NCBI RefSeq assembly: GCF_037042905.1
Contig: NC_087249.1
Location: 33,170,001-33,234,000, forward strand
Length of the DNA: 64,000 nt
Direction: 5' to 3'
Origin: Lytechinus pictus
Lineage: Eukaryota
Under the pieces are notes generated by a model. It ran no database searches and had not been told where the DNA came from. It was given only the letters and a program-made list of their open reading frames with translations. The position numbers and the translations under genes are program-made. Shown here one piece after another: positions 1,262-63,871 of this stretch. Numbering within the stretch: position 1 is the first letter of the stretch; each line of letters starts with the position of its first letter.

Positions 1262-1598
1262 TTAAGTACCGGTAAAGTCTACATGTATATATGTGTGAAA
1301 ATGTACTCCAACTGCTGCAATTATGAGATGCTACATGTATAATGCAATGCGAGGGGGGGGGGTAATTGCTATGAAATACACAAAAATGTAGATGATAGAC
1401 AACTAAATACACTTTTTAGCCCTTCTCTTGAAGAACTCAATAGTCAGATCAGTATACATGTACATGTACAACACTGATGGAAGTTTTGACATTTTTGGCT
1501 TCCCATGATTTTAGCACAGAGTTTAATTAGACCATGGTCTCAGTTAAACCCCACTTCATAATACAGGCCACTGTTCAAACTTTTCTTGAAGTATTTAA

Positions 1599-2003
1599 AG
1601 ATAAATTATGGCAGTTCGGTACCTAACGATCTCAAAATGACTTTTACAGAATCCAATAAAATGACCACCCAAGTGTCTGTTTGTATGAATAAAAAATATG
1701 TGCCAAAGGATTCTGGAAGAAATTGTGTAATTGCTGAGAAATAAGCAAAATAAGCGCGGATTCGGGCACTTCCGTCTGGTCTTTATTCCAGCAATAATGA
1801 TATACACTGTCCCATGTGTGCCTACCTGTGTTGGCGATCTTCAGTGTGATCGTTTATCAGCTTAGAATTTATGATTTCACAAAGTTCAGTTTATGTAACT
1901 GCACCAGATCTAGATCCACGATGATATAGTAATACTTCACCTTGGTTTTACAGACTTTCTCACGAAATCAGTGTTTCACTGCAACTACTTTCATTTTATA
2001 GCT
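1599..2003. mobile_element. TTAA-flanked Kolobok-like element family B, copy 1
   Basis: TTAA|AGATAAAT...ATAGCT|TTAA; ~400 bp with short imperfect TIRs. Copies at 10269 and 59509. Confidence 0.85.
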
Positions 2004-2860
2004 TTAACAGAAAGCTCAGTCTATCTGCATAAGCTGTTGGAAGTGTTGATCATTAAGGTGGATTGTTTCACTGTTCTCTATAAAGATAATTTTACCCTGG
2101 CCTATACTTCATGTGTCTATCCATGTTTTCTCATGTCTTCATGAGCACTGAGCAAAAAACTGAGGAAGTAGTTCAATCTGCAAGATTTTCAATTGACCAA
2201 CCACCTGGCTGCATGCTCATTCCAACATGTACAGTATCCCTTGAAACGTTGTTTAGCAGGGGTATTTACTTAAAAATGTAGACATAAATAAAGTACCAAT
2301 ACATGTGCATGAAGAACTCATTGACTTTATATTGCAGATATAAACTAAAAGGGAAAAACCAGGGGAGCTTTGACCTTGCACTTGATGCTCCACATGTTGA
2401 TTAAACTTTCCTAATGGAGGAAATACTTCCTTCACATTTAAAAATGTTGACAGTGTGTTACCATGGCAACTAACAGCTAAAAAACACTACCCTGGGAAGC
2501 CCTCTAATGGGAAATGCAAACATGTTATCTTAAGCTACTACTAATTGCTTAGTTTTGGTCTATTGAACTCTACTGCTTTGGACAGGGGATCCAATCATGA
2601 GTAAATGGGGGGGGGGGGCAGGGCAATTCAAGAAATATCAGGAACAGAGGCAAATTTATGCAACCTCCATACCCGTGTACATGTACTTGCAGTTATCTGT
2701 ACTTTAAGACTCAGAGAGAGCATATAGCTCTCATAAAAACACTACAAACAAGTTTTTAAAAATTGTATGCACAATATATACACAAAACTATGCAACTAAA
2801 ATGTGAGATATGATGTATGTTGTTGAAAAATTGATCCAACACTGGCATGTACAGTACTAA

Positions 2861-3243
2861 AAGGAGTAATCCGGGCTGAATTATACCTAGATCTTTATAG
2901 AGTAAAATTCACTGAGCAAAATGCTGAAAATTTTATCTATATCTGATAAACAAATAATGAAGTTATTGAATTTGAAAATATTTGTGAAAACAATTTTATG
3001 CACTTTGTCATGAATATTCATTAGGTGGGCAGATGATGTCATGTGCTCACTTTCATCCTCTTACTTTATGTTATCACATGAAACCATAAATATTGTATAT
3101 TCTTAGATATATGTGGGTATGGTATGTCTCCCTTATAAGTTGAAGCAGTGAACATATCTAATGCTTCAAACTCAGTTGTCAATCCATTTTTTTTTTGGAG
3201 GACAACATTTGAATAAATTATATTTTCAGCCTGAATTGCCCCT
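2861..3243. mobile_element. Degraded Kolobok-like MITE family E
   Basis: AAGGAGTAATCCGGGCTGAA...TTCAGCCTGAATTGCCCCT|TTAA; related to 60985-61530. Confidence 0.6.
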
Positions 3244-3953
3244 TTAACGTGATCACATTTCATCTGTTGGTTTAGCTGAAGAATGTTGATGGAACAAATT
3301 ATAAAAAGTTAACTGTAGTTGGAGTTTATGGTGTAATTTTTACTCAATTAGACAAATGGATCGTGACTGTAATGCTGTTTAATCACCCCTTAATGAATCA
3401 AGTGGCCTTTCATGATATTAGCCTCTTTAATACTGATCACATTGTAAACATGACCATATGAAGATGTAAAATGTAACAAATTAATTTCATAATAACATCA
3501 TAAAATACCCCATTCCCTTCTCTCTCTCTTCTTCTTCCCACTCATCCTTTATTTTTTATCATTTACATTATTTTTTATGACAGATGTACTTTACCGACTA
3601 GACAGGAATAACCGTCGTTTCTGGGGATTTATTTAACAATTTCTGACATTTTACTATAATCCCCATTCACCGACGGTAGTGTGTTAGTGCGAGCCTGCAT
3701 GTGTAGGCCTAATCGGGTCAGCAATTCGGGCGACCGGGTTTGGCCGGAGAGGAAAAAATGGCAGCCATGTGTTGCTGCCCTCTACGTTCAACGAGTTGTG
3801 CTTTTATCAAGGCTTTCCGATTAAATTTTAGATATCCTGGCCAATCAATGCGAGCGACAAGTTCCGAACGCACGCACATCTACAAGCGCAAAGCAGCGGC
3901 ACAAATCGCGATTTATAGCGACTGGTAAATACGTCTGTAAGGATGACGTCATC

Positions 3954-4482
3954 CAAGATGGCATCTTACATTGACCAACGAAAGGATCGAAGATGACTAT
4001 GTTTCGATCATCATTTGAAAGGAATTAGCTGTAACTGGGGTCTGAGGTACGATATTTCTGAATTTTATATATTTTTTCGTAAGTTTGAATGTACTTTCTT
4101 TTTTATAATGTGACATTTTATGTACAAAAAAACGATCTGAAAATTGGGTTTCCGCCGAATGTTAGATCTAACGTTACTGCTAATACGTTGGCTGAACGTA
4201 TGGGCCAATAACTCTTCAGTCAAGATGGCAACTTACATTGACCAACGAAAGGATCGAAGATGACTATGTTTCGATCATCATTTGAAAGGAATTAGCTGTA
4301 ACTGGGGTCTGAGGTACGATATTTCTGAATTTTATATATTTTTACGTAAGTTTGAATGTACTTTCTTTTTTATAATGTGACATTTTATGTATAAAAAAAC
4401 GATCTGAAAATTGGGTTTCCGCCGAATGTTAGATCTAACGTTACTGCTAAAACGTTGGCTGAACGTATGGGCCAATAACTCT
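3954..4482. repeat. Tandem duplication, two ~262-bp near-identical units (period 267)
   Basis: 3954-4215 and 4221-4482 both start CAAGATGGCA and end GGGCCAATAACTCT, differing at only a few positions. Confidence 0.95.
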
Positions 4483-4706
4483 GAAGTATTGGTAAGTGGA
4501 GCCAACGCAGTTCAGCGGAACAACCAAAATACAGAGACTGAAGCTTTTGGTCTATTTACCGACATGAAGGCAAAAATGTACAGAAAATGGTGCCCCCCCC
4601 CCTCAGAAAAATGTGATATATCTGTACACATGCCAATTTTAGTTTTGGGAGGAGTTATCTGAAGCATAAAAAGAAATGAAGATTGTACATGTAGTTCAAT
4701 ACTTGC

Positions 4707-4763
4707 CATAGGTAACCAGTATCTCCATAGGATATGAAATTCCTCCCTGTCAATGTAGTTATC
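4707..4763 (-). CDS. Naam: Nicotinamidase coding exon 3 (second EF-hand), ending at a GC donor
   Basis: DNYIDREEFHILWRYWLPM; with exon 2 it completes the EF-hand loop DDNQDNYIDREE. Acceptor ttttcacag; donor ATG|GCAAGT gives phase 0, matching exon 4. Confidence 0.88.
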
Positions 4764-5442
4764 CTGTGAAAACAAATGATCATTAAAGCTACTAAATAAA
4801 TGTGATTCATATAGATAAAAAAAAAAGAATAACAACTTAAAAAATTGAGCATTTTCATCGAACAGGAGTTCAGTGATGCATAGATACATGTACATGATAC
4901 AGCAAAATATTTCAAATGACTTAATTTACAACTATCCGAAATTGAAGCAAAACAAGATTTTTTTTTATTAAAAAAAAAGAGGTTAAAAATTACCAACCTC
5001 AATATGAACATTTCTTATAAAAGAATCAAATGATTCCATGCAGGACAATACAAAGTTGACTGTATATTCCTTCACCAAGATATTTATCTATCTATGTACA
5101 TGTACATCGTACTGCTTTCAACTCAAATGAAGTACCTGGCAAGATTAATTCATTTGTATGCACCAAATGCTGGAAACTACAGCTGGAGTTACAACCAAGG
5201 TATAGGGTACTGCTGAAAAGGCAAAGTTCTAAATATTGTACATACTATATACCTCTGAACATATAAAAATTGCTATAATTATAATGCCTCACTTTATCTA
5301 CTGTAATATACAGGTCTACCATCCCCTCCCCGCCCCTCTCCCCCATCCCACCTACCCACCCCATGCCTAAAAATATCCCCCACCCTCCACCATCCCCTTG
5401 TCACATACAGTATATCATCATCATTTATCTTGCTTTGAATAC

Positions 5443-5569
5443 CTGATTATCATCTAGCTGTTCAAATATCCGTCTTGATTCTGTTTCTGTGAGAGGAAAA
5501 CTCTTGCCATCTCCTACAAAAAGATCAAGACACATCTCATGAAATTCATCTTGGTCTAACCTGCCATCC
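5443..5569 (-). CDS. Naam: Nicotinamidase coding exon 2 (EF-hand region)
   Basis: (G)DGRLDQDEFHEMCLDLFVGDGKSFPLTETESRRIFEQLDDNQ. Acceptor ttctttttcag, donor CAG|gtattc; 127 nt, phases fit exons 1 and 3. Confidence 0.9.
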
Positions 5570-6077
5570 CTGAAAAAGAAAAGGTTAAGGAATAAAAAAA
5601 AGAAAGGTAGAACTTCATGAAATACATAATCATACTTCTTAACAAAATTTATGATGAATATCTGCAAATTTTTTGCAATAATTGATATAAGGGATACCAT
5701 ACGCAATATGATTTTTTCATTTTTGTAAAAATTGCACATTTTCATATCACTTAGCTTCATAATCAGTTATATGGCATAAATTGTATCTTCAAAGTATTTA
5801 CATGTATATAATTTCTTCCCTTTCCTTCTTGTTCTTCTTCTCTTCCTTGTTCTAGTTGTCACTCTCTTTGCCTCATTCACTTTGCTATATTATTCATACT
5901 CCTCAAATTTATATTTCTATGTTTCAATTTTCATTATATTATCTTAAAATGATTTGTCTTTTTCTCACTTTCATTTTTATTATTTTCACAAACATGTAGC
6001 TAGTTTTGTTTCAGACTTCCTTTTTTTGGAGGGGGGGGGGGGTAAAATTTCCTGATTTTTAGTAACATGTACATGTA

Positions 6078-6228
6078 GGGGGTATGAATTGTACATGACA
6101 AGTTGTCAGATCTGACATCTTTCTCTGATGTTGATTGGCTGAGAGGTATTGTTACTATGGTAACTGTCGGATAAAATGGGACTTGTCGGATAAAACGTCC
6201 GACAAGTACTTTCATGAAACGCCCCCCT
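6078..6228. mobile_element. Short MITE family J (further degraded copies at ~22653-22827 and ~23021-23163)
   Basis: Three loci share the core ctgacatcttt..ctga..ttgattggctg..ctatggtaactgtc.gataaaa..ggacttgtc.gat.aaacgtc.gacaagt..tttcatg. Confidence 0.7.
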
Positions 6229-6624
6229 GGACTCAAGACTATCCTTAATTAACAGACTAATTGCTGAGCTATTGATGGATAGCTGCCTAGCTGCCTACCG
6301 ACTTGCATATAATGTACTGATCTGGTTAATACACAGAGATGCATTAATGGATTAGAAAACCAACAGGCAATCCAGTGGGCACTCACCCCTATCCATTCGG
6401 AAAAAAAAAAAAACAATACAAACTCAAAGTACCATCACTGGATGATTAAATGGGAGAATAACCAGGGACTGATGATACCTGTAGTTGGTATGGATGATGT
6501 ACATGTAATGTGACAAGATGACAGTATTTCAACTGGCTGAGAGACTTTGACATACATGTAGATACCGGTACATTTCAAAAGATATTAAATGAATCATTAA
6601 TTAAAAGGAAGATATTTCAATTGT

Positions 6625-6800
6625 GGGGGCATCGTGGTCTGGTAGTCTGACTCTCGATCGTCTAGGGCTCAAACAGAGGGTCTTTGGTTTGAATCCCATC
6701 CATGTTTTCCTTTAGCAATAAATTTATCAACAATGTGCTGCACCCAACCCAGGTGAGACGAATTTGTACCTGGCAGAACTACTTCCTTTGAATGCAACAA
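6625..6800 (+). mobile_element. Old tRNA-derived SINE
   Basis: Degenerate A box (TGGTCTGGTAG) and B box (GGTTTGAATCCC), then a tgctgcacccaacccaggtga..gtacctggcag core. Confidence 0.5.
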
Positions 6801-7747
6801 GGTAAAGCTGGTGTATAGTGACCTTTTGAAAAGGCAACAAGATAAATGTCACTTGAAGTATGTATTATAGTTTACTCAGAATTTTCAATAAACATTACAA
6901 AATGACTTATAAAATGGCAGGATGTTTACCCTTATCTACTGAAAGGCCTTATCATTTTGAAAAACATTTTGAAAATGTTTTCAGTCAGTATTTCGGCACT
7001 GCATGCTACCTTAGGGATAAACACTAAACACCCAGGTACTTAAGAAATTTGAGATCTGCAAAAGGTACATACATGTGTATGTATTAAAGGCAAAGGGCAT
7101 TAACTTAACAATTGATGCAAAATATCTATAGTGCACACAAGGAATAACACATAATAAATTCCATATTCCTATGTCAATAAAGCTTCTCAATTCTTGCATT
7201 GGGTGATTTGGGGAATTTGCAAAGTCAATGCCTTCTCTAAATCATGCAATGACATTTTACAAAGCTGAGAAATGGACATTGTACTGAATCAAGGAAATAA
7301 GGTGCTCTGATGTAGTGTACACCGTAGAAGCTCTTTGATTTCAACAATGGAAGTTTGTCTACAATTCTTGACATGATTTGCATACAATAAAGACTGGTCA
7401 GATGATAGGTACCATACATGAAGGCCCAACATGTTTGCATTTTTTTTATCACGAGGATGGAAAAGGCTGTGACAAAAGATTTAAAAAAAAATAATAATAC
7501 TGGTATATTTGAAAGAATACATGTAGTCCTTGTCATTTCATTAAGAAAATAACAAAGATCTAATCACAAGAGGTGTGTAGTCAATCATATTTCATTTGAA
7601 CGGATTATACTGTACTTTCTTTACCTTGGAATATACATTTTTTCAACCACAATGTATATTTTGGTGGGAGCACATCTAGCTTAGCATGCATGATGTACTG
7701 TTATTTTTTAAATTATTTTTACTGCCCAAGACCACAGTTGTGCAAGT

Positions 7748-8314
7748 CCCGGGGGGGGGGGGGGGGGGGGGCCATTTACATTGACGAGTGGATACCATGC
7801 GCGACCAAAAAAAACACGTAAAAAGGATGTCTTTTTCAAGATAGGGCACGTTACGTACGTAACGTGATAAGGGTGTCAAAAACACCAAAAAATTTCGCTA
7901 GGAAAGCTACGTGTTTAGGGTCAAATTTACGGGGATGATAAAACAAAATTAAAATATTAAAGGATGTCCTTTTTGCCCAACACTACATGTTTAGAGTCCG
8001 ATTTGAGAGAGGTGATGTGGAAGGTGGGGCCATAATAAACCAAATGGTGTACGTGTTAAGGTAAAACCGACGACCGACGGACCCGTACGTGACATAACAA
8101 TAAATTATCGCTGTACTTGTTTAGGGGTTCATTTCAGAGAATACTTGCTAAGAGTATCGTTTTGTTTCCAATACTTGTTAAGGGTAGGGTTTCACACGCC
8201 AATACTTGTTAAGGGGTGCATTTTCAGAATATGGAAAATACGTGTTTAGGGTGCTTTTCGAGACCCCATGGTCACGCATGGTATTCACTCGTCAATGGAA
8301 GTGGCCCCCCCGGG
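7748..8314 (+). mobile_element. Non-autonomous DNA transposon family F (CCCGGG/poly-G TIRs, 8-bp TSD), copy 1
   Basis: TIR CCCG(n)CCA.TT.CATTGACGAGTG.ATACCATGCG.GACCA; perfect TSD GTGCAAGT at 7740-7747 and 8315-8322. Confidence 0.92.
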
Positions 8315-8658
8315 GTGCAAGTAGAAGTTTAGAACAGCTCATTGTTGTACCAAACATCACTATTCTAATAAGTTACATGTACCAGCATTAGACATTGCAC
8401 TTTTATTCTCTAAGGACTTCAAGTCCACTATCACTGTATCAGCACAAAATATAAAAAGCTATTAAAACTCCAGGGCTGGTAGCCTAATCAACTTGAATTA
8501 TAAAGCCAGAATTTAAGTATTTTAATCAGAATTTGTATTAAAAAAACTTCTTTGGTATTCTCAATCTTCTTTTTTGGCTTAGAAGTATTTTGCTTATGTA
8601 CATGTACATGTAAAACTAAGTTAGCAGCCTACATGGCTAAAGTATGGCTTACGTGCAG

Positions 8659-8927
8659 CAGTGGCTTACAGACGGGGGAGGGGCTTGAGGAAGCTTCCCC
8701 ACCCCCCCCAAAAAAAAAAAGATCGAGGAAAAAAGAGAAGAGGAAAGAGAGAAGGGTGAAATATGATACCAGTGCCATTTTCTGAATATTATATCAAAAT
8801 CAATCACAAAATTTGATTTTTGTAGTAATAAAAATGCAGATATTTATGCTCGCTCTCAACTTTTTACAAATTTTGCCCAATTCGCCATATTTGGCCCCCT
8901 AAAAAGTTTTGACTCATTATGCCACTT
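8659..8927. mobile_element. hAT-like MITE
   Basis: CAGTGGCTTA...TATGCCACTT termini; 8-bp TSD ACGTGCAG/ACGTGTAG (7 of 8 match). Confidence 0.7.
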
Positions 8928-10268
8928 ACGTGTAGTTAACAAATGTACATATGTATGCATGCGCAGTCATACATTCTGCGTACAGGGTGGATACATGTAC
9001 ATTGTGCATTGCGCATTGTTTTGCTTACATGTACACTTTATAACATCACAATTAGTACGGTACATTAAGTACAGTGTCTGTTGAAATTCTGAAGGTAAAA
9101 TTAAAAACAATTTTCTTTTTTTTCTAGAAAATGACATCTGATTTTACTGATTTTTTTACATATTTTTACAATACATATAGAAAGCTGCTCGCACACGACA
9201 ATAAAAAACTTAAAATTATTTTAACCTTTAAATTTTTTTGATGGAATAAAAACCTTCACCAATATATTTTATTAGTTTTTCTGTTATTTTTTTACACTAA
9301 AATTTTGGGTAAACTTCCCCTTTAAATCCTACAGTCTATAGACTACAGACAGTATCACAACAAATTATACTGTGTATCTTTGTTTTTTAAATGTTATGGC
9401 AGTGAGTCCAAACTTTGCGTGTGTCAATACAAGTACATTGTACATGTACAGTAATGTACTTCGCGGACGGTCATTATCTTAAAAACTATCCAATATCTTT
9501 AAAATCATACACCATCAATGTGAAAGCAACCTAAAATTACCCTCTAGCACTTTAATCAGTTTGTTCAGGATGAGTTCAGTATTCATGAAAATATTGACAA
9601 AAGATCTGCAAATTTGTCACCGTTAGAGCCCATTCCGAAGAAATCTTAATTGCTCAACAAGCATCACGATATCATCGTTTTGCAAACAAATATCATTAAA
9701 AAATGTGAGTTAAATGTGGAACTGACCGATTCTATAGCATTTTGCCGTTAATCTATATCTCACCTTTAAGAGCTTCAGTTATTCTTTAAATATAAAAAAA
9801 AACTTTGGTCCACAAAGTTAGGTCACACTTTTTCAAAATGGTTTTCCATCACAGTGCAAATTCGTCGATCAGAATAGAATTTTGAGATCGCGATTCCGGC
9901 GAAAACCCTTGACCTACTGTACATGTACTTCACATTTTGTCGATAATTTTATACGTTACGATCTTTCTGTCAATTTGATAGCTATTATTTGAATTGTTTG
10001 TTTTATGAAATTTGAATATTTTAAAACAAATTTAGCTTAATGAATATTTTTCAAATGTCCGTGAAGTTTGGACACCCCAACAATGAACATACATTACTTG
10101 CAAAATGATCTTTTTTCAATGCAGAAAGCTGTAAGTCGTACAAATTATTCATACTTTCATGAACAATGATTCAAGCACACTGTATAGGCTATGTCCAAAA
10201 TATATTGTAGTCCTGGTATTTTAAATGTATTAAAAATCAGTCTCTGGACACAAAAACAATATTCTTAA

Positions 10269-10667
10269 AGATAAATGCCAGTTGTGGTACCTAACGATCT
10301 CAAAATGACTTTTTACAGAATCCAATATAATGACCACCCAAGTGTCTGTTTGTATGAATAAAAAATATGTGCCAAAGAATTCTGGAAGATATTGTGTTAT
10401 TGCTGAGAAATAAGCAAAATAAGCGCAGATTCTGGCACTTCCGTCGGGTCTTTATACCAGCAATAATAATACACTGTCCCACGTGTGCCTATCTGTGTTG
10501 GCGATCTTCAGTGTGATCGTATTTCAGCTTAGATTTTATAATTTCACAAAGTTCAGTTTATGTAACTGCACCAGATCTAGATCCACGATGATATAGTCAT
10601 ACTTAACCTTGGTTTTACAGACTTTCTCACGAAATCAGTGTTTTACTGCAACTACTTTCATTTAGCT
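10269..10667. mobile_element. Kolobok-like element family B, copy 2
   Basis: High identity to 1599-2003; TTAA on both sides. Confidence 0.85.
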
Positions 10668-12070
10668 TTAATCTCACATACATGAAGTCAATTGTAATAC
10701 TTACCAAACACTTTTTGGAGATTCATCATTCAACCAAACAAACACATTATTTTCTTAAAATTAATCTCACTATATTGTATCATGTATATATACAATTACC
10801 TAAAAAAAATAAAGATATACAATTTTTGCCGAGATCAATTCCTTTTTTATATCAGTTCCTATTGCACCCATCTACCGTATCTTTGCATGTGAAATATTTA
10901 GGCCATTTGAAAATAGTATCCGACATGTATGGTAGTGGATCGTATTACCGAACACTTTTCATGAATTCAATCATATCAAACACATTACTCTCATAAAATT
11001 CACCAAACTTCCACCATAAATACACAATTACCTACAAAATATAAATATGTAAAAATTTTGCCAAAATCGTTTGTCCCTTTTATGATATAAGCTTCCAATC
11101 GGACCCCTCTTCGCATGTGAAATATTTTGGTCACTTGAAAAAGGTATCGTATTACCGAACGTGTGTTTTCTATGGGAAAAGTTGTGAAAAAAACAAAATC
11201 ACTGATGAGCTATTTTGAGCATATTTTATTATTTTTAGAATATTAAGACTTTGAAAATGTGTTTTTGACAATTTTCATCATCTTTCTATTCAAGTTCCCT
11301 TTGAAAGGATGTTACAAAATTTTGAGCGTATGAAATTATTTTCTGACGCGTACGATGTGCGCGTTCGGTAATACAAGGCCGGTCGGTAATACAATCACTC
11401 ACTGTACATGTAGGATGGGGGGTCGGGTGTCCGGACACTTTATATTTTTGATGCATTCTTTTTTGTCTTTGGATTACACTAAAAATATGACTTCAAATAG
11501 TTGTAATCATCTTCTATTTTGTTCTCTATAATATTTCCTAACACTTTGTACTAAAAATTGATGAAACTTCGCTTGTAAATTTTTCCACAACCTGTCCGGA
11601 CACACAACAACTGGGTATACATACTGAACGTGTGCTTTCTGCGGGAGAAGATAGAAAATTAACAAAATCTTTGAGCTAATTTTACCATATTTTGCTATTT
11701 TGAAAAATACTTGGCCCTTTTCCATCTTCCTTCCATTCATTCAAAGAAAAAAGGTTGTTGCATTGCCTACTTGTATCAAATTATTTTCTGACATGCCGGC
11801 AGTTTGGTAATCATGTTTTTAGTTGATTATTTGTGAACTCTGCTGAGTCTGTAACTACCCTGTAATTTGTAACTGTGTAAGTAATCTTTGATTGAAATTC
11901 AATTTGAATATTAAATTATTGATCACCTTCTTTATCAAGACTCAAGTTCATTGATAGTTTATTACAGTGTAGTTGTGCACAAATTATGGTCACTGCACAA
12001 GCACCATCATGATAAATTAAAGGCCTCTTTCTAAGTAAGTTTAAGTAAAGTAAATAAATATTTTTCTAAC

Positions 12071-12171
12071 CCTCTTTTGTTGTAGCGTTTCAAACACGTT
12101 GCCTCTTTCTCACGATTTCCAGAGAAAGACAGATCATTCTTGAGATTATCGAAGAAGTTTTCTGCAGACAT
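12071..12171 (-). CDS. Naam: Nicotinamidase coding exon 1 (start codon)
   Basis: ATG at 12171 with an in-frame TAG 12 nt upstream. MSAENFFDNLKNDLSFSGNREKEATCLKRYNKR-GG|gttag; the GG joins the first G of exon 2 to build the EF-hand loop NKRGDGRLDQDE. Lies in a CpG-rich segment. Confidence 0.82.
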
Positions 12172-12490
12172 ATTGATTATCTAGTCGACGACAGAAGAGT
12201 GGAAAACAAGGCTTGGTCCTCCTGGTAGGCTAGTGCTTATGCTTGAGGCACCGACGTCTTTCTGGCTAACAAATGGCCTCAACTCTCGTTGTTCAACGGG
12301 GCAGCGCAGGGTGAAGTTTATACCTGCATCCGCTGCTGCAGCTTCACGTACACAAAGCACAGTTTGTTTACATTCGCGACTACCAGGATTGAGTAGTCAG
12401 CTGATTTATGGCGGCGCGCGATCGCGAAGTGACTCATCGCTCATGTCACGTCATCGCTCGTTAATAACGTTGACTCGACGCGCGCAGTGC
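12172..12490 (-). promoter_or_regulatory. CpG-rich 5' UTR/promoter region of the nicotinamidase gene
   Basis: Locally CpG-rich against a CpG-poor background. AP-1 site TGACTCA at 12430-12436 and ATF/CREB-type ATGACGTGAC (minus strand) at 12445-12454, directly upstream of coding exon 1. Confidence 0.55.
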
Positions 12491-12701
12491 AGTATAGATC
12501 TTTGGTATAGATACTGGATAGAGGGGGGGGGGGGGGGGGGGGGGGGGTGTCAGAATTTCGAAGAAAGGACGAGGTGCAATGAAAAAAAAGGAAGAGGGAG
12601 AATGAGCAAGGAGCTTGTGTTGGAAGCTCCTTGGAATGAGAAATGAATGTGCCAAAAGAGAGAAAAAAAAATAAGGCGTACCATACTTTTTGAAAAAAAA
12701 A

Positions 12702-12925
12702 GTGATAGCTAGGTTGGTAATACCAAGGTTTTTTTACCTGAATGCTAAGAAAGCACGAATGCCTGTGAGCAAGCAACCAGGGGACCAACGACTTAAGGTC
12801 CTCTCCGAGGGACCTGGTAATGAGGATAAATGCATGCCTTACCAAAGTGCACTAGCGCACCACTTGGGAATCGAACCCGGGTCACCCGGCCGGAATCCGA
12901 AACCCCCGCTCTACCGACTGAGCTA
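12702..12925 (-). mobile_element. tRNA-derived SINE
   Basis: A box TAGCTCAGTCGG and B box GGTTCGATTCCC, followed by a ~150-nt non-tRNA body; no closed cloverleaf. Confidence 0.8.
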
Positions 12926-47878: not shown

Positions 47879-47919
47879 CTAGAGTGATAATCAGAGAAAG
47901 AAAAGATCTTCAGCTTTAA

Positions 47920-51243: not shown

Positions 51244-51445
51244 NNNNNNNNNNNNNNNNNNNNNNNNNNNNNNNNNNNNNNNNNNNNNNNNNNNNNNNNN
51301 NNNNNNNNNNNNNNNNNNNNNNNNNNNNNNNNNNNNNNNNNNNNNNNNNNNNNNNNNNNNNNNNNNNNNNNNNNNNNNNNNNNNNNNNNNNNNNNNNNNN
51401 NNNNNNNNNNNNNNNNNNNNNNNNNNNNNNNNNNNNNNNNNNNNN
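51244..51445. other. Assembly gap (202 N)
   Basis: Run of N characters. Confidence 1.
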
Positions 51446-51563
51446 GTCATCATAAATAATAGGCCTATCATAATTTTAACAGTACATGTAGCAGCAGCAG
51501 TGTTATCCCCATTTGTATACTCTCCATGCCAAAACTATCAAAAGCTCACTAGTATAATCCATT

Positions 51564-51880: not shown

Positions 51881-53889
51881 ATTGACTCTAAATTATAACT
51901 GCAAGATAAAGTACACCCTTATGATTTATGATATTGTACTTTAATTCTGCTATAAATGTTACACTGATGACAAGCACACTACACGAAACACGTAAATCTT
52001 GTGCCATGTTTACAAAGGAAGTGATAATTCATTTTTCACGCATCGCCTGCATCAATGTCAATTAAGTGGGCTTTACGCCATCAAGTCACAATCAGTGCTG
52101 TCTGCTTCACCATCTGTGTCACTATCCAATGCATTTCAGATTTTGCCCTACATTTTAAATAGTATACATGTAGGCCTACTGTACACGTTCATCTACAAAC
52201 TACATGTACAGTATGTTTGGGGCCGATGAAGTACACGCCTGATCTAAAATGCTACAGTAGTCATTCCAGTATAAAATCTGTATATATACATAGAAAAGTA
52301 GGCACGTACATGTACGTAGGTCCTACCATATTTTGAATTTCATTCACAGTATTATAGATCTATGAACAAAAAGAAATGCACTTTGAATCCTTTTTTTCCA
52401 TCCTCATCCTCAAGAAAAAAAAACTTAAAATGTCTTGAGGAAAAATTTGAAATCAGTATTGTCAGCAAAATATATCATTGGCAACTTTAAACCAAAATAT
52501 CTGATTTTGCATTTGATATTTAAGAAGGAAACAGCATACAGTTTTCAAACAATAAGGAAGTCCTGTCTTGAGTCTAGAATTCGCAAACACTCTCTATACA
52601 TGTATGTACTGTACATGATTTGAAAGTACACTGTTTACTATTTGCTGCACACTTGAAGAAAAAAAAGAGAGAGATTTCAGCAGTAAAGTTAATTTTCCTT
52701 CCTTTGAAATTACAAGTACACGCAGGTCTCCCTCCTGGCTACATGTACCTTCTTTATCAATCAGCAAGAAAAAAAGGTTTTCATGTACATATGATGTACA
52801 TATGTGATCGATCATACCGAAATGAGAGACAAGTCGCAAATCAAAATTCCTTGGAATTCGACACACAAATAAAAAAGTCAAAATTGTGAAGATTTTTTTT
52901 TTTTTCATTTTCTGATTCTTCCATGTTTCATAATTACTCTGTGAAAAAGATGAGTGAAATTGGTGACGGGAATATGATAAAAAATCAGTTTTTCTGCGAG
53001 TGTTTTTTTCGGTCAATTCGAAAAATTTCTGATACTTGGCACGTTCGACTTGATCGAATTTCGCTTCATACTAAGCTCCGCCCCTAGCAACGTATGCCAT
53101 TGTTGATTGGCTATTCATTGAAACTCGTGTACAGCTGGCGGCGGCCGCTCGCTCCATCGATCGATCGGTTCAATGATTCAGCTTCAAAAGAAAGATCAAA
53201 AGCATCGATTTCAATACGTATTCTGAAATTCAAAAGGGAGGCTTCTTGACAATAGTTAACAAACGGGATACAACTTCTAAAGGGTTATTTTTTGGTGATA
53301 ATAGTACCAGGCGGGGGTATTAGCGGTAGATTGATACCGGATTTAGAGTATTAGCCTGGCTATAATCGCGAAATAAAAGTCATGCAGAGACGCAAAGTAT
53401 TCAGAACACGGTTTGTTTGCGAGGATTAATTTCATTAAACATAACATGGACATGTTGAAGATTCTCTCCATCATTTGCAAGTGATCGGGATGTTTTCAAG
53501 AGAGAACATTTTCAAAAGAAAGGGTTTACAATCCTTAAAAGTATTGTTTGTTCGTGAATGTGAGTTAATTGATCTGCAGTATCTTTAACAAAAGAAACAA
53601 AATTTATGTAGAAAGCTTGGTGGGCTTCATTATTTCCAATTATTTATAATCAAGACATTGTTGCCCTCAATTTTTATCATGTTTGAATGAACGATAGAGA
53701 AAGCGAAAGAAATAACTGTACAAACAGAAAGTCTGAGACAGCTAACGTCGACCAATGAAAAATGGCCGAAACGACCATGCAGAAGGTTTAGTGCATTTTT
53801 TTGGATAAAGACATTGATTGAAAATATCAGTCATTTAAAATACACATATAAAAGTCATTGTCATGTTGTTCCATTCGACTGTGTCCAGA

Positions 53890-54710
53890 TCTATTCTCTC
53901 TTTCCCTCTCTCTTATTCTCTTACCTACTTCTTTCGTCTTTCTTGTGTTTTATTTCTTCCTTTCTTCCCCTCTCCCCCTTTTCGTTTGCTCTTATTATTC
54001 AGGTCATTCGGTCTCCTCTCTCTAACCCCTCCCCTATTCTATCTCATCCCCTTTCTCTTCTTTAATTCTTTCGTCCCTCTTAATCTGTTTTTCTTTCTTC
54101 CCTTTCGATCTTTTTTTTTTCTCTGCCGATTTTTCCCCCCTCCTTTCCTTCTTCTCTCTTGCCTTTTTTTCACCCTCCACTTTTTTTTCTCAATTTTTCC
54201 CCTTTTCTTCTTGTTTTCGTTTCTATTTACATAATTCTGTTTTTCGTTCTTCTCACCCTTCGATCTTCTCTCATTTTGCCGGTTTTCTTTCTTTTTTCCT
54301 TCTTTGTTTTCTCCCTCCCTCACCCACCGCCTTATTCCTCTTTTTTTCTTTCGTTCCTCTTTATATGATTATGTTTTCCTTCTTCCTCCCCCCTGCCCAT
54401 TCCCACCATCTTATTCCTCTCCCCCCTCCATTTCTTTTTCTTCTCCCCCGTCGATCTGCTCTCAATATTTTTAACCTCATTTCTTCCCCCTTTTTTCCTT
54501 CTTATTCCTCTCTCTTGCTCACCCCACCGTCTTATTCCTCATCCTTTTTCCTCTTATTTCTTTTGTTGTTCTGTATTATTCGTTCTTCTCCCCATTCGAT
54601 CTTCTATTTTTTTTCACAGCCGTTCTTTCTTCTTCCTCTTTCCTTCCCACGCGCGCCCATGCACCGTATTGTTCCTCCATTCTTCGTCTTATTTTTTAAA
54701 ATCCTCTTTA
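53890..54710. repeat. ~800-bp polypyrimidine low-complexity tract inside the 3.56-kb element
   Basis: C/T-dominated, with recurring CTTATTCCTC and TTCGATCT motifs. Confidence 0.9.
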
Positions 54711-54872
54711 TATGTTTGAGAGTGAACACATGCGAAAAAATATCGAACAGCTTTTATTGTTCTTCCTTTAATCATTCAATCTTACAAAGACATCATTGTT
54801 GCACAAGGCATTTGCAACAATCTTCTGATTCTTTATCTGTATTACTGCGTTAGAATATACATATTTTTTTTA

Positions 54873-55047
54873 AACAAGTGCACACCAAGCTACCAATAAT
54901 GCCTATAGAATTTCCATTTATTTGAAAGCAGGATAAAATAGCATTGCACATTAAATGCCTTGCTCACAGGCATAGGTGCCGCGGCCGGGATCGAACCCCG
55001 GACTTTTTATGTATAGCCAGGCGCCTTAGACCACTCGGCCACGGCAC
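54873..55047 (-). mobile_element. tRNA-derived SINE, left member of a head-to-head pair
   Basis: A box TGGCCGAGTGG, B box GGTTCGATCCC, body ..GTGAGCAAGGCA..GGTGTGCACTTGTT. Confidence 0.8.
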
Positions 55048-55098
55048 AACCAAAATATTGTTTGTGCTTGATATCGATCCGAAAATCAGCATTCGTGG

Positions 55099-55215
55099 AG
55101 GTGTCTGGCCGAGTGGTCCAAGGTGCCTGACTATACATAGGAAGCCCGGGGTTTATCCTGCATTCAAATAAGTGGAATGTTGTATGCATTATTGGTAACT
55201 AGGTGTGCACTTGTT
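55099..55215 (+). mobile_element. Internally deleted copy of the same SINE in opposite orientation
   Basis: TGGCCGAGTGGTCCAAGGTGCCTGACTATACATA..GGGGTT, then a deletion through the B box, then the same 3' end GGTGTGCACTTGTT. Confidence 0.78.
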
Positions 55216-56523
55216 AGTTTATAAAAATCTTAACTCCCCTAATCTATCCTTTGTTGGAAATAATTGTGGCGGGATTTTACTCAGGGTACCTCCTCGCTCT
55301 TTTTGTTGTAGAGTTAAGACGTTTATGCCAGGTTTTTTTTCCGGAATCAGTTTTAGAATCACTATAACTTTTTTTCATTAATATATCTTGGGGTTTTTTT
55401 TATACTAATTTTGAATCATTCCAATGCTGTAAATAATTATACCCCCCCCAACAAAAAAAAAGATCGATAATAGACGATATTGAGCAAATTATTCACGTTT
55501 TTTGTTCTCACTGCCTCAATCTAACATATAAGCATTCATAAAACATGATCACACAAGCCTTTCGTATAAAGATAAGGTTCAAATTGAAATATTTTGAAGG
55601 CTTATCTTACCATTTTACAACGGATAGTTCTTTTTATTAGAACATGCGGTTAAAGTTTAGGTCATAATGACTCGCTTGATAGATTACATGTGAGAGTAAA
55701 CGCGATCGACATTCAAACAACCGCATAGAGGCAATTTGCGGTATATGAAATTTTTATTATTATTTAATAAACAAGACGATGATACAATGAAAATCATTGG
55801 TATACTCCCTCCTCACTGGTTTTAGGTCCGACCTTTTCTCCCTGCCTTTTATTTCATTAAAAAGGGAGATCATGACAATTATGTCTTTCACGAATATAAT
55901 TATAAAACCCCAGTATAACTATGGAGCTATTACACTGCTCTGTATAGAAGATCAGTGGATTGACATATCGAACCAGAACATTAACTTTGTTTCGTCTTGC
56001 AGTCGCGCGTGACCTGCAAGTTCACTATTGTTCCAAATGCAGCCTCCTCATTGGTCAATCGTTTCGCCTTCTTTGGCAAGCGGTTGCTAGGACATTTCTG
56101 TTAGCTCGGCGGTGGCAAAATAGATTTTTTCATGGAGCGGATTCAAAACGGAAGTCAAACTTCGAAGGCGTTTTTCTCTTGATTTTTATTTTCAAAAGCC
56201 CAATTCTTCTTGCCTTCTAAGGCTAATATCTCCACTATTATTTACTCTTAAGGGTCGAGTGATATATCAAATTAAAGGTAAAGAAACGGAGAACAATAAT
56301 CACTACAAAACTTGGATTTGAAAAATTCCGAGTTGTCTCTCATTTCGGTATGACGAGTCACATATGTACATGTAAATGGCACGCATAATGTTGAAATAGT
56401 GGTTGGCAACAGGTCTACAACGGCTCATGCCAAAAAACCCTCAAAATGATGCATACTACTCAGTAGATCTAAGGACACTGCTGTACACTACATGTACATG
56501 TACTACATCTACTGTAGATCTAA

Positions 56524-57005
56524 TATGCTTTTCACACTGCACTTTTTGTCCTAAATTGGTGGGGCTAGGGGGGGGGGTCTTAGCCCACCAATTTCCCAGG
56601 GTTAAGCTTAGCCCACTTCGTTTTCACACTACGTTTTAATAGCAAAGTGGGCTAGCACGGTAAATAGTACAGTACTATCTGGCCCTGCAAAAAAGCAGGG
56701 TTAGCTGGCTTCACAATTGCGGTGCCAAGAGATGCAGTGTGAAACGAAACAGGGCTAAGCAAAAGCGGGGCTAAGCATTAGCCAATCACAGAAGTCGAAA
56801 TTGCACGTTAATCGCGCTCTGTATGGTAAAATCATCAATATTTATGAGCTGTGTGATTGCCTGGGGTTAAGGCGTTAACCCCGGCTAAGCAATAGTACGG
56901 GGTTAAGAAAGACAGTGTGAATAAAAAAAAAAGATAGTATGGGGTTAAGGATAGTCCGGGGTTAAGGATAGTATGGGGTTAAGGAAATGCAGTGTGAAAA
57001 GCATA
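56524..57005. mobile_element. Harbinger-like MITE with internal GGGGTTAAG repeats
   Basis: TAA|TATGCTTTTCACACTGCA...TGCAGTGTGAAAAGCATA|TTA, a perfect inverted repeat. Confidence 0.82.
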
Positions 57006-57820
57006 TTAGTGGGCTCAGGGCGATTTAGCCCCTGAAAATGCTAATTAATGAAAGAGCCCTGGATAATCTCCATTCATTGCAATGTTAAAATGTTGCAGAT
57101 TTAGGCATTAAGGTGTGAAAAGTACTTACATGTAGTCCCCCCCAAAAAAAAAAAATTGTCAGGATATAGGCTTACATGTATATGTACATGTAAATGTACC
57201 TGTTGTGTCAAATACATCATATAAAAGAAATTACGAATAAAGTACATGTATGGCAATTTTAAAACATTGGATGTGATACAGCTCTAGCTTTGCAACAAAA
57301 CTTGAACATTGTATACATGTATCCCTTTTCCGACACATGTTGATTGAATTTGGTGGCTCATTGCCATTTGTGTACAGAATTAATTTCCCTTATTTAAAGT
57401 GAAGGCTAGTTCATTTGTGACTAATTGTCACTAAATTATATAAATTACCTGCATTATTTGTCTGTTTGGCTGCAACAGTACATCCAAAGTACAGTACAAT
57501 TAGATAATGATCTTCAAATTGCAGTTACATGTACATGTAAAAGTTTCAATTGAATTAACCATTTGATTTCTGTGAAATGACAACATGTTCATGTAACCCA
57601 ATGTACATTTATGTTAATGTATCCTGAAAATCAAGGCACATATCCTCCTCTTTTTTTCCTTTTTTTTTTGGTGTTAAAAGAAAAGTTGTAAGATAAACAT
57701 GTGGTCTGAAAGGCTATAGAATATAGGTCCAAATTTGACATCTAGAGAGAAAAATATTATTTTTCCCTTGTACATGTACATGTAATATCTCACAGAAAAT
57801 GAATTGTGTTGGTTACAACT

Positions 57821-58119
57821 GGGCCCCGTCTTAAAAGAGTTACGATTGATCTAGTCAACCACAACTACGGAAAGCCAGCAATGTCAACATCACAAATTAT
57901 GCATGTTTGTTCAAAATATTTTCTAATTTGCTATATATTCATACTTTCATTGCTTTTTTTTGACAATTCAGTGTGCTTTTCTTTGTTTAACATAAGACAT
58001 TGTGCAAATTTCTGGAAGCAAAAATTATAACAATGATGGATTTCCATATACATGTATGTACTGTACATGTAGATGAGAGTAATTGGATCAATCGGAACTC
58101 TTTGTATAAAGACGGAGCC
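57821..58119. mobile_element. Degraded MITE
   Basis: GGGCCCCGTCTTAAAAGAGTTACGATTGATC / GATCAATCGGAACTCTTTGTATAAAGACGGAGCC, imperfect TIRs. Confidence 0.65.
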
Positions 58120-58526
58120 TTGGGATGGTCACTAGGAAGAAGCAATATTACATAAAATAAATATTGTACATGTACATGTACATGTAGCAACTGAAAGGCA
58201 GGGTAACAGAGCCAACTTTCTGTCAGCTACATGTACCAGTTTCAGCTCAGTTTACATACATATCAATATTTCATGCAGAGATTGCAATCCTATGAATACC
58301 CCTTCATATATAAAAACATTGAATTAAATATTTCAAAACTGAAATAATTCAATGGGCACAGATTTTCTGTGATAAGTGCCTAGTATTATTAGTGGGTCAG
58401 CATGATTTACAGAACTAATCTGTGATGATTAAGAGCTGCGACAGAGATCTACAGCGTACATAATGTAGCCACTGTAAGGCCAACTGGATTCTGCCCAAAT
58501 GAAACATATCCTGACTGAATCTTTAA

Positions 58527-59110
58527 AGGAGAATGAAACCCTTGAAACCAGCTGAATCCATATCAAAGAGAAAAATCAAAGAAACATATTGTTGAAAGTT
58601 TGAGGAAGATTGAATGAATAATAAGAAAGTTATGAGCATTTGAATATTGAGATTACTAATGCCATGTAGATCCTCCTATTGGCAATGCGATTAAGATCTG
58701 TGATGTCACACACGTACAACTCCCTCATTACTTTAGTACATATTTCACTTATTTTCTCACTTTTATAGAGTCTATCACAAGGTGAGGTGTTCTCTTTATG
58801 AGAGGACAAGTACAGAGGTTTCACAACATTATATCATTGATGAATCGTTTGTCATATGATTAGAATGAGCAAAAAGAGATGTTTTGGGGTATATTTTCAG
58901 CGTCCAAAAGGGGAGAGTTGTTCATCAGTGACATCATAGATCTTGGTCGCATTGCCAATGGGAGGATCTCCATAGCATTAGTGATCTCGACATTCAAATG
59001 CTCATAACTCTTCTATTGCTAGTCCTATTTTACTCAAACTTTTGTTGATCTTATTCTTTGATTTTTCTGCTTTCACAAAAGCTAACTTGCTCCAAGAGTT
59101 TCATTCTCCT
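58527..59110. mobile_element. Kolobok-like MITE family A, copy 3
   Basis: Intact TIRs and TTAA on both sides. Confidence 0.9.
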
Positions 59111-59508
59111 TTAATATGACAGGGAACTACAGTATGCAAGTTCTTGAGATGTCTGTGACTCTGACAATACAGTCAAAATTGAGATGAATCAAAATAGCAG
59201 TAGAATACCGCTATTAAATGGAGAGGGTGTGTGGATGATAATGGGAAAAAGTGAAGCTATATTAGATGTACATATTTTGTACATGTAGGTACATGTAGAG
59301 CCAATCAAACTGTTTTTAAACTCATAGCCTACTGTCTGCATTTATATGAATCCATAATTATAATATAATGCACACATTATGTGTTTATAGGTGCTGGAGC
59401 CTGGCGAGTACGCATGTCATTATTGGAGGTACATGTATGCTTTTGCTGTTGTCTAGGGCATTCCTCCTATTAAATTTCATTGCTTTTCAGGCTCTAGTAC
59501 AAATTTAA

Positions 59509-59902
59509 AGATAAATTCCAGTTTTGGTAACGAACTCAAAATGACTTTTTACAGAATCTAATATAATGACCACCCAAGTGTCTGTTTGTATGAATAAAAA
59601 ATATGTGCCAAAGGATTCTGGAAGAAATTGTGTAATTGCTGAGAAATAAGCAAAATAAGCGCGGATTCTGTCACTTCCGTCGGGTCTTTATTCCAGCAAT
59701 AATAATACACTGTCCCACGTGTGCCTATCTGTGTTGGTGATCTTCAGTGTGAACATTTTTCAGCGTAGATTTCAAGATTTCACAAAGTTCAGTTTATGTA
59801 ACTGTACCAGATCTAGATCCTCGATGATATACTGACAATTAAGCCTGGTTTTACAGACTTTCTCATGAAATCAGTGTTTACTGCAAATACTGGCATTTCT
59901 CT
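59509..59902. mobile_element. Kolobok-like element family B, copy 3
   Basis: High identity to 1599-2003; TTAA on both sides. Confidence 0.85.
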
Positions 59903-60984
59903 TTAAGTTGTTTTCGTGCTCAGTTATCATTTGTATGTATATTCTTTAGTCAGTCCGGCATGGGTACATTCAAATTCTTCCCAATATCCCTCTTTATTTC
60001 TTTTATCTTGCCTGGCAATACACACTGTACTTGTTAATAATATGTTGAATGTGTTTTATTTGAATTTTAACAATGTGTAACTTTATATGTTTATACCAGA
60101 ATGTGCAATACTCTCTCAGTGGTTTTTCTAGTGAGGGCTCGCATGCCTCTGGGCAATAGTACTGAATTTTACTTTTGCGAGCCCTGGCCCATGGAAAAAC
60201 CATTTTCTTACTCTTTTTTTCTTTTCTTTCATTTCTACTTTTAAAATAAATAAATAAAAAATCGATTTCAAATTATATTTTTGTATTGTACAATGTTTGT
60301 ATATTTTTTTATGGCCAAATAAATAATAATAATAATAATAACATCTTTGGAATGACATAGGCCTACATGTAGATTAAATTGATTTTGATGACAGATGAAA
60401 TTCCATTTGTAAAGCATTATTTGATTATGGTATCTCCTTCTTTTTTACTTAATTTAAAAAGGAATTTTTCAACACTTTTTACTGTAGGATATCAATTATT
60501 TGAACTTGGTACTAACATACATGTAATTCATAAACTACCTCACTCCTAAAAAAAATTGTTTTCCAATGCACTGAGAATACTAATCTTGGATTTAAGCTTG
60601 CTTGGATAATAGTTGCATCATATATCAAAGATCAGTGGCGGCCGCACAGAAGCGTTGTAAGCATAACAAAACGCTATTAAAACAGTAGGGCCAGTCACAT
60701 CTTTCACGGGCGACACCACCTAGACGCATTGTTTTCACGATTAACAGAGCACTAAAAACAGGAGGCCAATCGGTATCGATAAACTCACAGAAGCTTAGCC
60801 GAATTCCTAATAATCTAACAATAAAAAGCCCAGCATAAGCTAACAGTGGCGCTAATGTTAATACAAATCGCTAACAGTGCCAAGGGCACCAATAGTGACG
60901 ATGTTAACTGTGAATAATTTCTCCTTTTAAAACTTGTCTCACTTTCTTATACCAAGTAATTTGAAATAGACTCGACCGAATCAA

Positions 60985-61530
60985 AGGGGTATTCCGGGCC
61001 CACACAAGAATATATGAATAAATAGAGTAAAATTAGATGAGCACATTGATGATAATTTCATCAAAATCTGATAAAAAATAACAAAATTCTTGAATATTAA
61101 AAATTTAACACTGTATTTTGCAAATGATAATACTGAGCAGCATGTGGCCATGAATATGCAATAATAAAATGGAACGATGATGCCATATCCTCTAGCTCTT
61201 TCCTCTTTTTCTGATTTTATTGAAATGAACTCATAATTGTCTTGAATGTGTGCATGTCACCCGAGTAACAAAATGATGATCTTTGAAGCAATATTCTGGG
61301 TGGACAAAATTCAAATAAACCTAATTTTGTATGATACAACATACCCTCATTGCATATTCCTGAAGACATGAAATATAATTCACCGAAATAGGGCCTAATT
61401 AATGCAAAATTTTAAGATAGCATAATTTTTTGTATTCATTTTCAATTATATTATTAATTTATCAGTGTTTTGTTTCTCTCACTTAATAACTGTTCAAACC
61501 ATATTATTTTCTCCAGCCTGAAATACCCCT
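60985..61530. mobile_element. Degraded Kolobok-like MITE family E, second copy
   Basis: AGGGGTATTCCGGGC...GCCTGAAATACCCCT|TTAA; shares the subterminal tagagtaaaatt..tgagca..a segment with 2861-3243. Confidence 0.6.
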
Positions 61531-61950
61531 TTAAGAATGGGTATAGCGGAAGATGTTGATTAGTGCCAAGATATGATCCTTTTCATCAAGATTTTTTTCT
61601 TCCAAGATATATCATTTTTTAAAAGTCTTTGAAGACATTTTTAAGAATAGACCCTACATTAGAAAGAAGAACAATAGCTGATGAAATTTGTCGCATGATA
61701 ATCATCATTGGCAAATACTCTTTCATGAGCTTGATTATTGAGTGAAGTCTGCGAAGAGCATTTTCAAACAAAATAAACTGATGAAAAGTCGGATTGCATT
61801 TTCTTTTGGTACAGAATCTCCATCGTAATATCAATTCATAATAGGCTAATTTTCTTGATCTTTTTTCAATCTTATTCGATATTTTTAAAATTAAATTAGT
61901 AAATTATAAATATATATTTACTACTTACTGTCATTTCATGTTTAAAATAT

Positions 61951-62890
61951 AACTAGAGATGCTCGGTGGGTCGCACGGCCGAGCACATGTATCCCCCGAA
62001 CCCACCGCGTCATCCGTCATTGCGTATATAGAGCTCACACAGATATTCAACAAATAAATACAATTGTCATGGCGACAATGACCCTGACCACATTTTGCCT
62101 GTGGGTACCAAATTTGATGACAATAATATGACGTAGCAGCATGACTCTGCAGAACCTAAAATATTGTCCAGTATCACCTGTTGGGGAATACAATTATAGA
62201 GTAATCTGGATATATTTTATAAACCTAACCCTAAGACCCCCCGACAAAAATTATAGGCATCTTCGCTTCACCTTCTAATATTGCTTCTGTGTGCCAACTG
62301 TTACATGTATGACAAACCGGAAAAAAAGCAGAAGTTACAGGTTTTACCAAATTTTCCACAAAAATATGGTTACCATGGCAACCATGTCTCCACCCACTCC
62401 AAAATCATTAGCCAGCTTTGCTTTACCATAATAAACCTTCATGACAAATCAGAAGATAATTGGAGAAGAAATGCAGCCAGTAAAGCACTCACAAGGAAAT
62501 CTCTTCTATTTCCACAAAAACTCTTGTTACCATGGCAACGATGTCATCGCCCACACCAAAATCAATAGGCGGCTTTGCTTTACCATAATGGACCTTCATG
62601 CCACATTTGAAGATGATCGGAGAAGAAATGCAGCTGGTAGAGTGCTCACAAGGACATCTCTGCTATTTCCACAAAAAAACTTGTTACCATGGCAACGATG
62701 TCTCCGCCCACACCAAAATCGATAGGCTTCTTCGCTATACCATACTCAACCTTCATGCCAAATTTGAAGATGATCGGAGAAGAAATGCAGCTCATAGAGC
62801 GCTCACAAGGAAATATCTGCGGCGGACGCGGCGGCGGGACGAGGCCAAATCCATAGTATCCTCCGAACTCTGCTCGGGGGATACAATAAT
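61951..62890. mobile_element. Second Helentron-type element with a 157-bp tandem array
   Basis: Subterminal IR TGTATCCCCCGA (61988-61999) / TCGGGGGATACA (62874-62885); terminal hairpin; GCGGCGGAC microsatellite; TACCATGGCA recurs at 62371, 62528 and 62685. Confidence 0.82.
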
Positions 62891-63871
62891 ATTTAATGAA
62901 ATTTTTGTAGGCCTATAATACATTACATTCCTTTACCCTTTCCTAGACAAGATTTTAAACTTGTAGGATGTGCAAATAATCATGACTAAATCTCAAGTTA
63001 AATCTAGAATAGATCACTACGCACAAATTACAGATTTTGCCTGACTCAAATCCCCTAACAACACTCGCGCCTAACGGCGCCCTAACAGTGCTTTCTGCGC
63101 CTTCTGTGCGATCATTCTACCCATGTTGCTAGTAGCCGATTCGTTAAAGAATAATGACAGATTGTGATGTCAAGCCACAATCTTTGATCCCAGATGTAAA
63201 TAATGCATTAATAGCTCCATGCTTTGACATTAGCCATCGCGGCAAGATTACCGGTTGTAACAGGGCCCTTTGTTAGCGCAGTGTTAGCGCAATGTTACCT
63301 AAACAGTGTTTCTGTGCGGCCGATACAGAATGTTCTGAATTTACATTGCATATTTTCAGTATCAAGGTCATTTCCCATATTCATTTTTGTGAATGAATTT
63401 AGTACCTTCCTTGGGTCTCTTTCACAATGACTGGCAGATAGAAAGTGTATTCTCTATTTGTATTTCCTTTCGTCATGGGAACAATATGATATACATAAAT
63501 TCTTCATTAACCCCACATTTTCAAATAAATTCATCACAGCAATTCTACATGTAAAAAAAATCAATCTTGCATTTTATTCAATGATGCATTTCTGTTTCAT
63601 AATTTATGGTATGGGTAGCACATAATGTACATAGTTTTACAATACGTCCATGGAATTACCTGATCAAAGGTAGATTTCACATATCAATGAGCTCAACCAC
63701 AATCTGATTGATGACATTAATAAAATATTAATATGTTTTTCTATCTAATTTTTAAAATCACATTTGGATAGTTTGTTTACATTCTATTATTCTACACTGT
63801 TAACAATAATGAACAACTTCCAAACTCATTTCCCTCCTAAAGATCTAAGGACAAGTGAAATATTTACTTAC

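Follow-up and report, generated by a model that had tools for sequence, protein, structure and literature searches.

A 64,000-nucleotide stretch of the Lytechinus pictus genome (contig NC_087249.1, positions 33,170,001 to 33,234,000; hereafter the window, meaning this whole stretch) raises the question of why one short palindrome, the octamer TACATGTA, in which CATG stands between two TA dinucleotides, recurs across it about fifty times above chance. The original prediction for this DNA, made from the sequence alone, had described a window-wide excess of TA-NN-N'N'-TA palindromes and read it as a fossil record of transposon excision. The excess of TACATGTA is real and strong. We give a little more than an even chance to the view that these octamers are excision scars of cut-and-paste Tc1/mariner transposons with CA..TG ends.

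With regard to the size of the excess, TACATGTA is found 96 times in the window, against 1.83 ± 1.26 copies (maximum 5) in 100 dinucleotide-preserving shuffles and 1.6 to 3.9 copies expected from Markov models of orders 1 to 5 built with the motif masked. All counts skip words containing N, and the sole assembly gap (51244-51445) is spanned by none of the counted motifs, the closest to it being a TACATGTA at 51193-51200 and a TAGGCCTA at 51460-51467. The window has a G+C content of 35% and is depleted in CpG (observed/expected 0.51). The 96 octamers form 84 arrays, of which 73 are single, 10 double and one triple. The inner hexamer ACATGT occurs 143 times and is enclosed by T and A in 96 of these cases, while the presence of TA on both sides of the extra bases holds for TACATGTA by definition of the word. 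Every coordinate of the original prediction proved correct, and its estimate of about 20 copies in the first 12 kb compares with a recount of 21.

The comparison was extended to the 16 palindromic words and the 136 classes of the form TA-N4-TA, which implies a correction for 16 to 136 tests. TAGGCCTA is present seven times, exactly at the places named beforehand, against 0.42 expected (Poisson p 9e-8, order-3 background), and the heptamers TACAGTA and TACTGTA, earlier described as frequent, total 43 against 8.2, a number reached by no shuffle. These two excesses are solid and those of the other cores weak. TAGATCTA occurs five times, twice within a tandem duplication of 272 bp (97% identical, 3949-4487) that carries one TAGATCTA per copy, so that these two represent one event; TACCGGTA occurs three times. 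For both words the enrichment is suggestive only (p 0.002 to 0.005, uncorrected). The other twelve palindromes are at expectation. The proposed count of all 16 octamers against a Markov background, carried out here for this window, thus upholds TACATGTA and TAGGCCTA and leaves TACCGGTA and TAGATCTA borderline, and the predicted excess of the class as a whole is not borne out.

The sequences around the octamer indicate what kind of process could have produced it. Apart from 12 overlaps within multi-unit arrays, the listed flanks of TACATGTA are unlike from site to site, and the sites are therefore not copies of one dispersed repeat. The immediate flanks nevertheless show a preference, ATG|TACATGTA|CAT, with A at -3 in 46%, T at -2 in 48% and G at -1 in 43% of the arrays and a right side that mirrors the left. 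This preference ends abruptly at the fourth base (-4), which argues that the flanks are not decayed repeat units; this is how a palindromic target site, ATG-TA-CAT, behaves. The fraction of TAs that carry a motif climbs about 8-fold from zero to three flank matches.

The same flanks bear on the possibility of a hexamer microsatellite, (TACATG)n, generated by replication slippage or 6-bp tandem duplication. Such an origin would be in line with the 11 arrays of two or three units and with a period that is partly continued in the flanks. The triple array (TACATG)3TA at 58167-58186 also fits, since contigs from two other samples cover it with net length differences of -12 and +6 letters. Notwithstanding, four periodic flank matches are needed, and 65 of the 73 single sites have fewer, 25 of them none. 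Flank similarity extends over only three bases per side, and slippage may alter the length of an array but cannot create sites. As an origin, the microsatellite is thus largely refuted and appears very improbable.

Substitution, for instance by CpG decay of TACGCGTA, TACGTGTA or TACACGTA, is refuted as the main source, and we accord it hardly any credence. The CpG depletion of the window is compatible with it, as is the site at 38075, whose motif has AACACGTA as its aligned counterpart in two sister copies of the repeat. However, the four double products of TACGCGTA are due equally, and the other three, TATGTGTA, TACACATA and TATGCATA, are found 0, 6 and 3 times against 96 for TACATGTA; the precursors TACGCGTA, TACGTGTA and TACACGTA are themselves rare (0, 3 and 1). 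Slippage and CpG decay had both been named in advance as processes that might produce the motifs; neither explains them, as most single sites lack periodic flanks and the sibling products of decay are at background.

An excision footprint is expected to be surrounded by end-joining variants, and such a spectrum is present. When words are sorted by how much of the left and of the right end is kept between the two TAs, the maximum lies at CA+TG (96 against 2.8). Around this main product there are 43 words one base shorter (25 TACAGTA and 18 TACTGTA, against 6 each) and seven one base longer (four CA+CTG and three CAG+TG, against 0.4 each). CAG+CTG is absent, and the +4 forms are barely, if at all, in excess. 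The heptamers had been attributed to a footprint of the Sleeping Beauty type; no separate family is needed for them, each being TACATGTA minus one central base.

Furthermore, words of this CA/TG grammar chain through shared TAs, with 161 single, 26 double, three triple and one quadruple occurrence, whereas two control grammars give 41 single and two double, and 40 and none, respectively. The longest mixed chain, TA-CATG-TA-TG-TA-CTG-TA-CATG-TA, lies at 58049-58071; the loci 52597-52613 and 58049-58071 have the same 21-letter chain, ATACATGTATGTACTGTACATG, that at 52597 being a near copy. Two chains through a shared TA had been reported before and are as described, namely TACATGTAGGCCTACTGTA at 52165-52183, in which CATG, GGCC and CTG units share TAs, and TAGGCCTACATGTA at 60358-60371.

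A search for TA-flanked inverted repeats in the window returned two real elements. The first, TA|CAGTG..CACTG|TA at 43714-44532, had already been recognised in the original prediction. It is a Tc1-like non-autonomous element that is bordered by TA at either end, terminates in CAGTGCGTCCCA..TGGGACGCACTG and has arms of 363 nt with 85% complementarity. The TA on its right also opens the TACATGTA at 44533, and its left flank is TACACTGTA. The second, of 3.57 kb, lies at 52799-56366, with ends CATATGTGA..TCACATATG and 46-nt arms that are 87% complementary, and is inserted in ATG|TA|CATGTA, again at the first TA of a TACATGTA; Pfam searches detected no transposase in it. Both elements have CA..TG ends (CAGTGCG.. 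and CATATG..) and both sit in the TA of a TACATGTA, even though motif TAs make up 3.5% of all TAs (joint chance 0.0012). Their target sites, CTG|TA|CAT at 43714 and ATG|TA|CAT at 52799 (n=2 elements only), are like the flanks of the scars, ATG|TA|CAT. This coincidence argues that whatever generated the motifs has both its end sequence and its target preference in common with the resident elements. The earlier proposal that each core records the termini of a TA-targeting family is supported for CA..TG, which matches both elements, and finds no counterpart for GG..CC, CC..GG or GA..TC, as no element with such ends was found in the window. Inverted repeats starting TA|CATG were also sought, and all matches were the motif arrays themselves.

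The TACACTGTA at 43705-43713 abuts the left side of the first element, whose right end is ..CACTG, and has the appearance of an earlier scar left by this Tc1-like family with five end bases retained; TACACTGTA and TACAGTGTA together occur seven times against 0.8 expected. Nested within the 3.57-kb element is a small palindromic element (54873-55215). The TGGCCGAGTGGTC.. in its arms is similar to a portion of a tRNA, although ARAGORN predicts none in the window.

The reading as excision scars can be set out as a sequence of steps. A Tc1/mariner-superfamily element with CA..TG ends would insert at a TA, duplicate it and later excise by staggered cuts that leave its outermost bases on the flanks, and end joining would seal these leftovers into a scar of 6 bp, TA-CATG-TA. 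This result could come from either of two cut geometries. The overhangs may be of 2 nt, CA and TG, both of which would be kept; alternatively, 3-nt overhangs of an element with CAT..ATG ends could pair on the central AT and be filled in. The 3.57-kb element starts with CAT and, with a 3-nt stagger of the Sleeping Beauty type and overhangs that read CAT on either strand, would give exactly TA-CATG-TA, as the counterpart of the Sleeping Beauty scar TAC(A/T)GTA. Loss of one base during joining would yield TACAGTA or TACTGTA. The elements would favour the flexible palindrome ATG|TA|CAT, and chains would arise because each scar offers fresh preferred TAs. Our inferences are the +6 insertion at each octamer, the family responsible for the scars and the way in which its ends were cut.

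The octamers are not spread over the window as had been claimed, since 82 of the 84 arrays lie in two dense fields, at 1280-11412 (21 octamers) and 30151-63553 (73 octamers). Both fields hold about one array per 485 bp, the density of the second being taken outside the young element at 52799-56366; the interval 52748-56366 is devoid of arrays. The 18.7 kb between them (11413-30150) contain two arrays against 24.7 expected (p 1.3e-10), at 20175 and 20536, and these adjoin or lie inside a TTAA-type miniature inverted-repeat transposable element (MITE) at 20254-20762. All seven TAGGCCTA and the surplus of TACAGTA and TACTGTA also fall in the dense fields. The sparse field is not free of genes despite its scarcity of motifs.

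Confinement to fields is one of the points in favour of a functional motif, which a dimeric protein would bind in DNA or RNA and which selection would maintain in certain genes. The word is a perfect palindrome and has few decayed copies (82 with one mismatch, 38 of them by chance, beside 96 intact). On the other hand, a density of one per 485 bp, unique flanks in introns or intergenic DNA, and overlapping and mixed chains are unlike regulatory sites, and the insertion of mobile elements into TACATGTA has been tolerated. Moreover, no paper tying the word to an animal factor was present in the literature searched, and this explanation seems improbable.

The main rival is a micro-insertion that involves no element. 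A break at ATG|TA|CAT, made by a nuclease, a domesticated transposase or a topoisomerase, would be repaired by a short palindromic fill-in to TA-NN-N'N'-TA, with CA/TG strongly favoured and GG/CC as a minor product. This explanation would account for perfectly palindromic products and for the enrichment of more than one core, as TACATGTA and TAGGCCTA are followed by TAGATCTA and TACCGGTA among the 136 TA-N4-TA classes. It would also accommodate the 40:1 excess of scars over elements and the lack of a GG..CC element in the window, and the fields would fit a process tied to chromatin or transcription. However, CA..TG are exactly the ends of both resident TA-flanked elements, which have the same target preference, and the graded CA+CTG and CAG+TG forms include the third base of a transposon end. 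Furthermore, no repair pathway known to us would add one and the same dinucleotide, with its complement, at thousands of sites. Overall, micro-insertion appears unlikely.

Several observations weigh against the reading as excision scars. The scars outnumber the resident TA-flanked elements by about 40:1; this ratio is possible if elements hop repeatedly before they decay, for which, by our estimate, an excision rate of about 1e-6 per generation would suffice. Neither element has a second copy in the window, no GG..CC element was found in it to account for TAGGCCTA, and 40 window open reading frames (ORFs) contain no Pfam transposase domain, although 64 kb cannot exclude a transposase elsewhere in the genome. 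Simple Tc1/mariner biology would not lead one to expect sharp fields; the integration of Sleeping Beauty, for example, is close to random. In addition, no pair of TA versus TACATGTA, orthologous or paralogous, was recovered from the self-comparison of the window or from contigs of other samples. In the self-comparison, the repeat copies were too diverged or free of motifs, and the sole well-aligned case, at 38075, with AACACGTA in two sister copies, points to a substitution plus a 4-bp indel. The control site 42021 of the original prediction lies in an alignment that is only 73% identical. Two further points of this kind emerge from the comparison with known systems.

What is known of excision scars comes from assays and a handful of polymorphic loci. 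In Sleeping Beauty, the scar is TA-cag/ctg-TA, so that, as proposed here, the outermost transposon bases are held between two TAs and made uniform by overhang pairing (PMC5224488); the corresponding heptamers are enriched here 43 to 8. The main product in the window is one base longer, CATG, and is seen as a putative fossil record of natural events rather than in an assay. The Tc1 element of C. elegans shares with the present reading the TA target, the CA..TG ends and a 2-nt stagger, and its scar is usually of the +4 kind, TATGTA or TACATA, in 73-78% of events (PMC12632400). The worm element thus keeps one overhang, whereas the +6 form dominates here. TATGTA and TACATA are without excess in the window (78 against 72), which is the first of the two adverse points, as repair would have to end here in another way than in the worm.

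Minos scars carry four terminal bases from a single arm and lack palindromic symmetry. Minos belongs to the Tc1 family and resembles the present case in that its excision leaves 6 bp behind at TA (PMC10992017); no Minos-like element was identified in the window. In rice, natural excision polymorphisms of TA-targeting Mariner/Stowaway elements have been catalogued over the genome, as would be the case here for natural excisions, with 8 of 94 excisions being perfect and insertions outnumbering excisions (PMC4423477). The second adverse point is that the rice scars are untidy and rarer than insertions, while the window holds one exact word at about 40:1 over elements. A search of the literature for the word or the phenomenon returned no relevant report, and none that describes scars as a predominant genomic feature open to counting. 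The chemistry matches Tc1/mariner excision, and the novelty lies in how many such words there are, how uniform they are and how they are restricted to fields.

As to age, the 82 one-mismatch variants of TACATGTA (38 expected) beside 96 intact copies fit fairly recent events. Under neutral decay, the ratio corresponds to a mean divergence of about 5%, or to a process that ran steadily through roughly the last 14%. The 3.57-kb element contains no motif against 7.4 expected (p 6e-4) and yet is inserted into one, which suggests that most events predate it or that such elements are refractory.

A wider scenario can be proposed more tentatively, and we hold it to be possible rather than probable. 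One or a few Tc1-like families may have followed a long hit-and-run regime in the germline, in which about one TA in 35-40 within permissive chromatin fields was visited and vacated, so that the scars, at 40:1 over the survivors, would map openness to transposition; TAGGCCTA would then reflect a second family or a second chromatin state. If the octamers are scars, each would represent one past insertion and one past excision, and rates of transposition over evolutionary time would become measurable. Target preference could be read without bias toward the elements that stayed, and bounded fields would show which parts of the germline genome were accessible. Insertions of 5-6 bp would also be a sizeable source of indels, arising per TA about as often, in order of magnitude, as point substitutions do per base. 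The earlier suggestion that introns grow by these insertions is nevertheless overstated, as the 96 units amount to 576 bp, or 0.9% of the window.

The comparison with other samples was made with reads and contigs of four of them over 56300-62299, a stretch dominated by very high-copy MITEs. Between 13 and 30% of 31-letter words sampled from the window are common to public samples of the animal, which indicates that the species is highly polymorphic. Among 12 of the 106 rows of indels in this stretch, none lay at a motif. One contig across 60211-60662 has a net length of -9, which, like the -12 and +6 across the triple array, is compatible with 6-bp steps and no more. Another contig covers 59109-59503 with only 4 gap letters and contains the motifs at 59280, 59290 and 59430, and the presence of these three in an independent sample rules out an assembly artefact. 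An origin in a repeat consensus was also ruled out, since recognisable young repeats are almost without the motif.

With regard to the repeats themselves, the TTAA-bounded MITE at 59505-59906 has copies at 10265-10671 and 1595-2007 that are 91-93% identical, and its family shows a very high word depth in all four runs. It is missing from the contig of sample X1, which joins 59503 directly to 59902 and thereby reveals a presence/absence polymorphism. Metagenome contigs scanned for copies of the high-copy MITE gave one 1.3-kb match with no similarity beyond it. A 595-bp TTAA-type MITE with ends TTTAAAGGAGAATGAAAC is present in three copies, 94-96% identical (671-1265, 47914-48508 and 58521-59115), with zero TACATGTA. 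A further repeat family (7765-8311 and 37829-39681) starts and finishes in G/C runs (GGGGGGGCCACTTACATTGACGAGTGG..), is the source of much of the G8/C8 excess and forms a nested inverted complex at 37.8-39.7 kb.

Scans of the window for tRNAs and Rfam families found nothing, and protein searches gave one distant relative without DNA and nothing for the ORF that spans two motifs. The sparse field carries coding exons on the minus strand at 22284-22595, 23191-23556 and 27176-28837. The gene or genes at 22284-28837 include a 554-codon disordered exon with an open frame and 55% identity to P0001, and further exon matches on the same strand are to DUF5917 (E 2.9e-6) and to a KELAA motif (E 1e-12).

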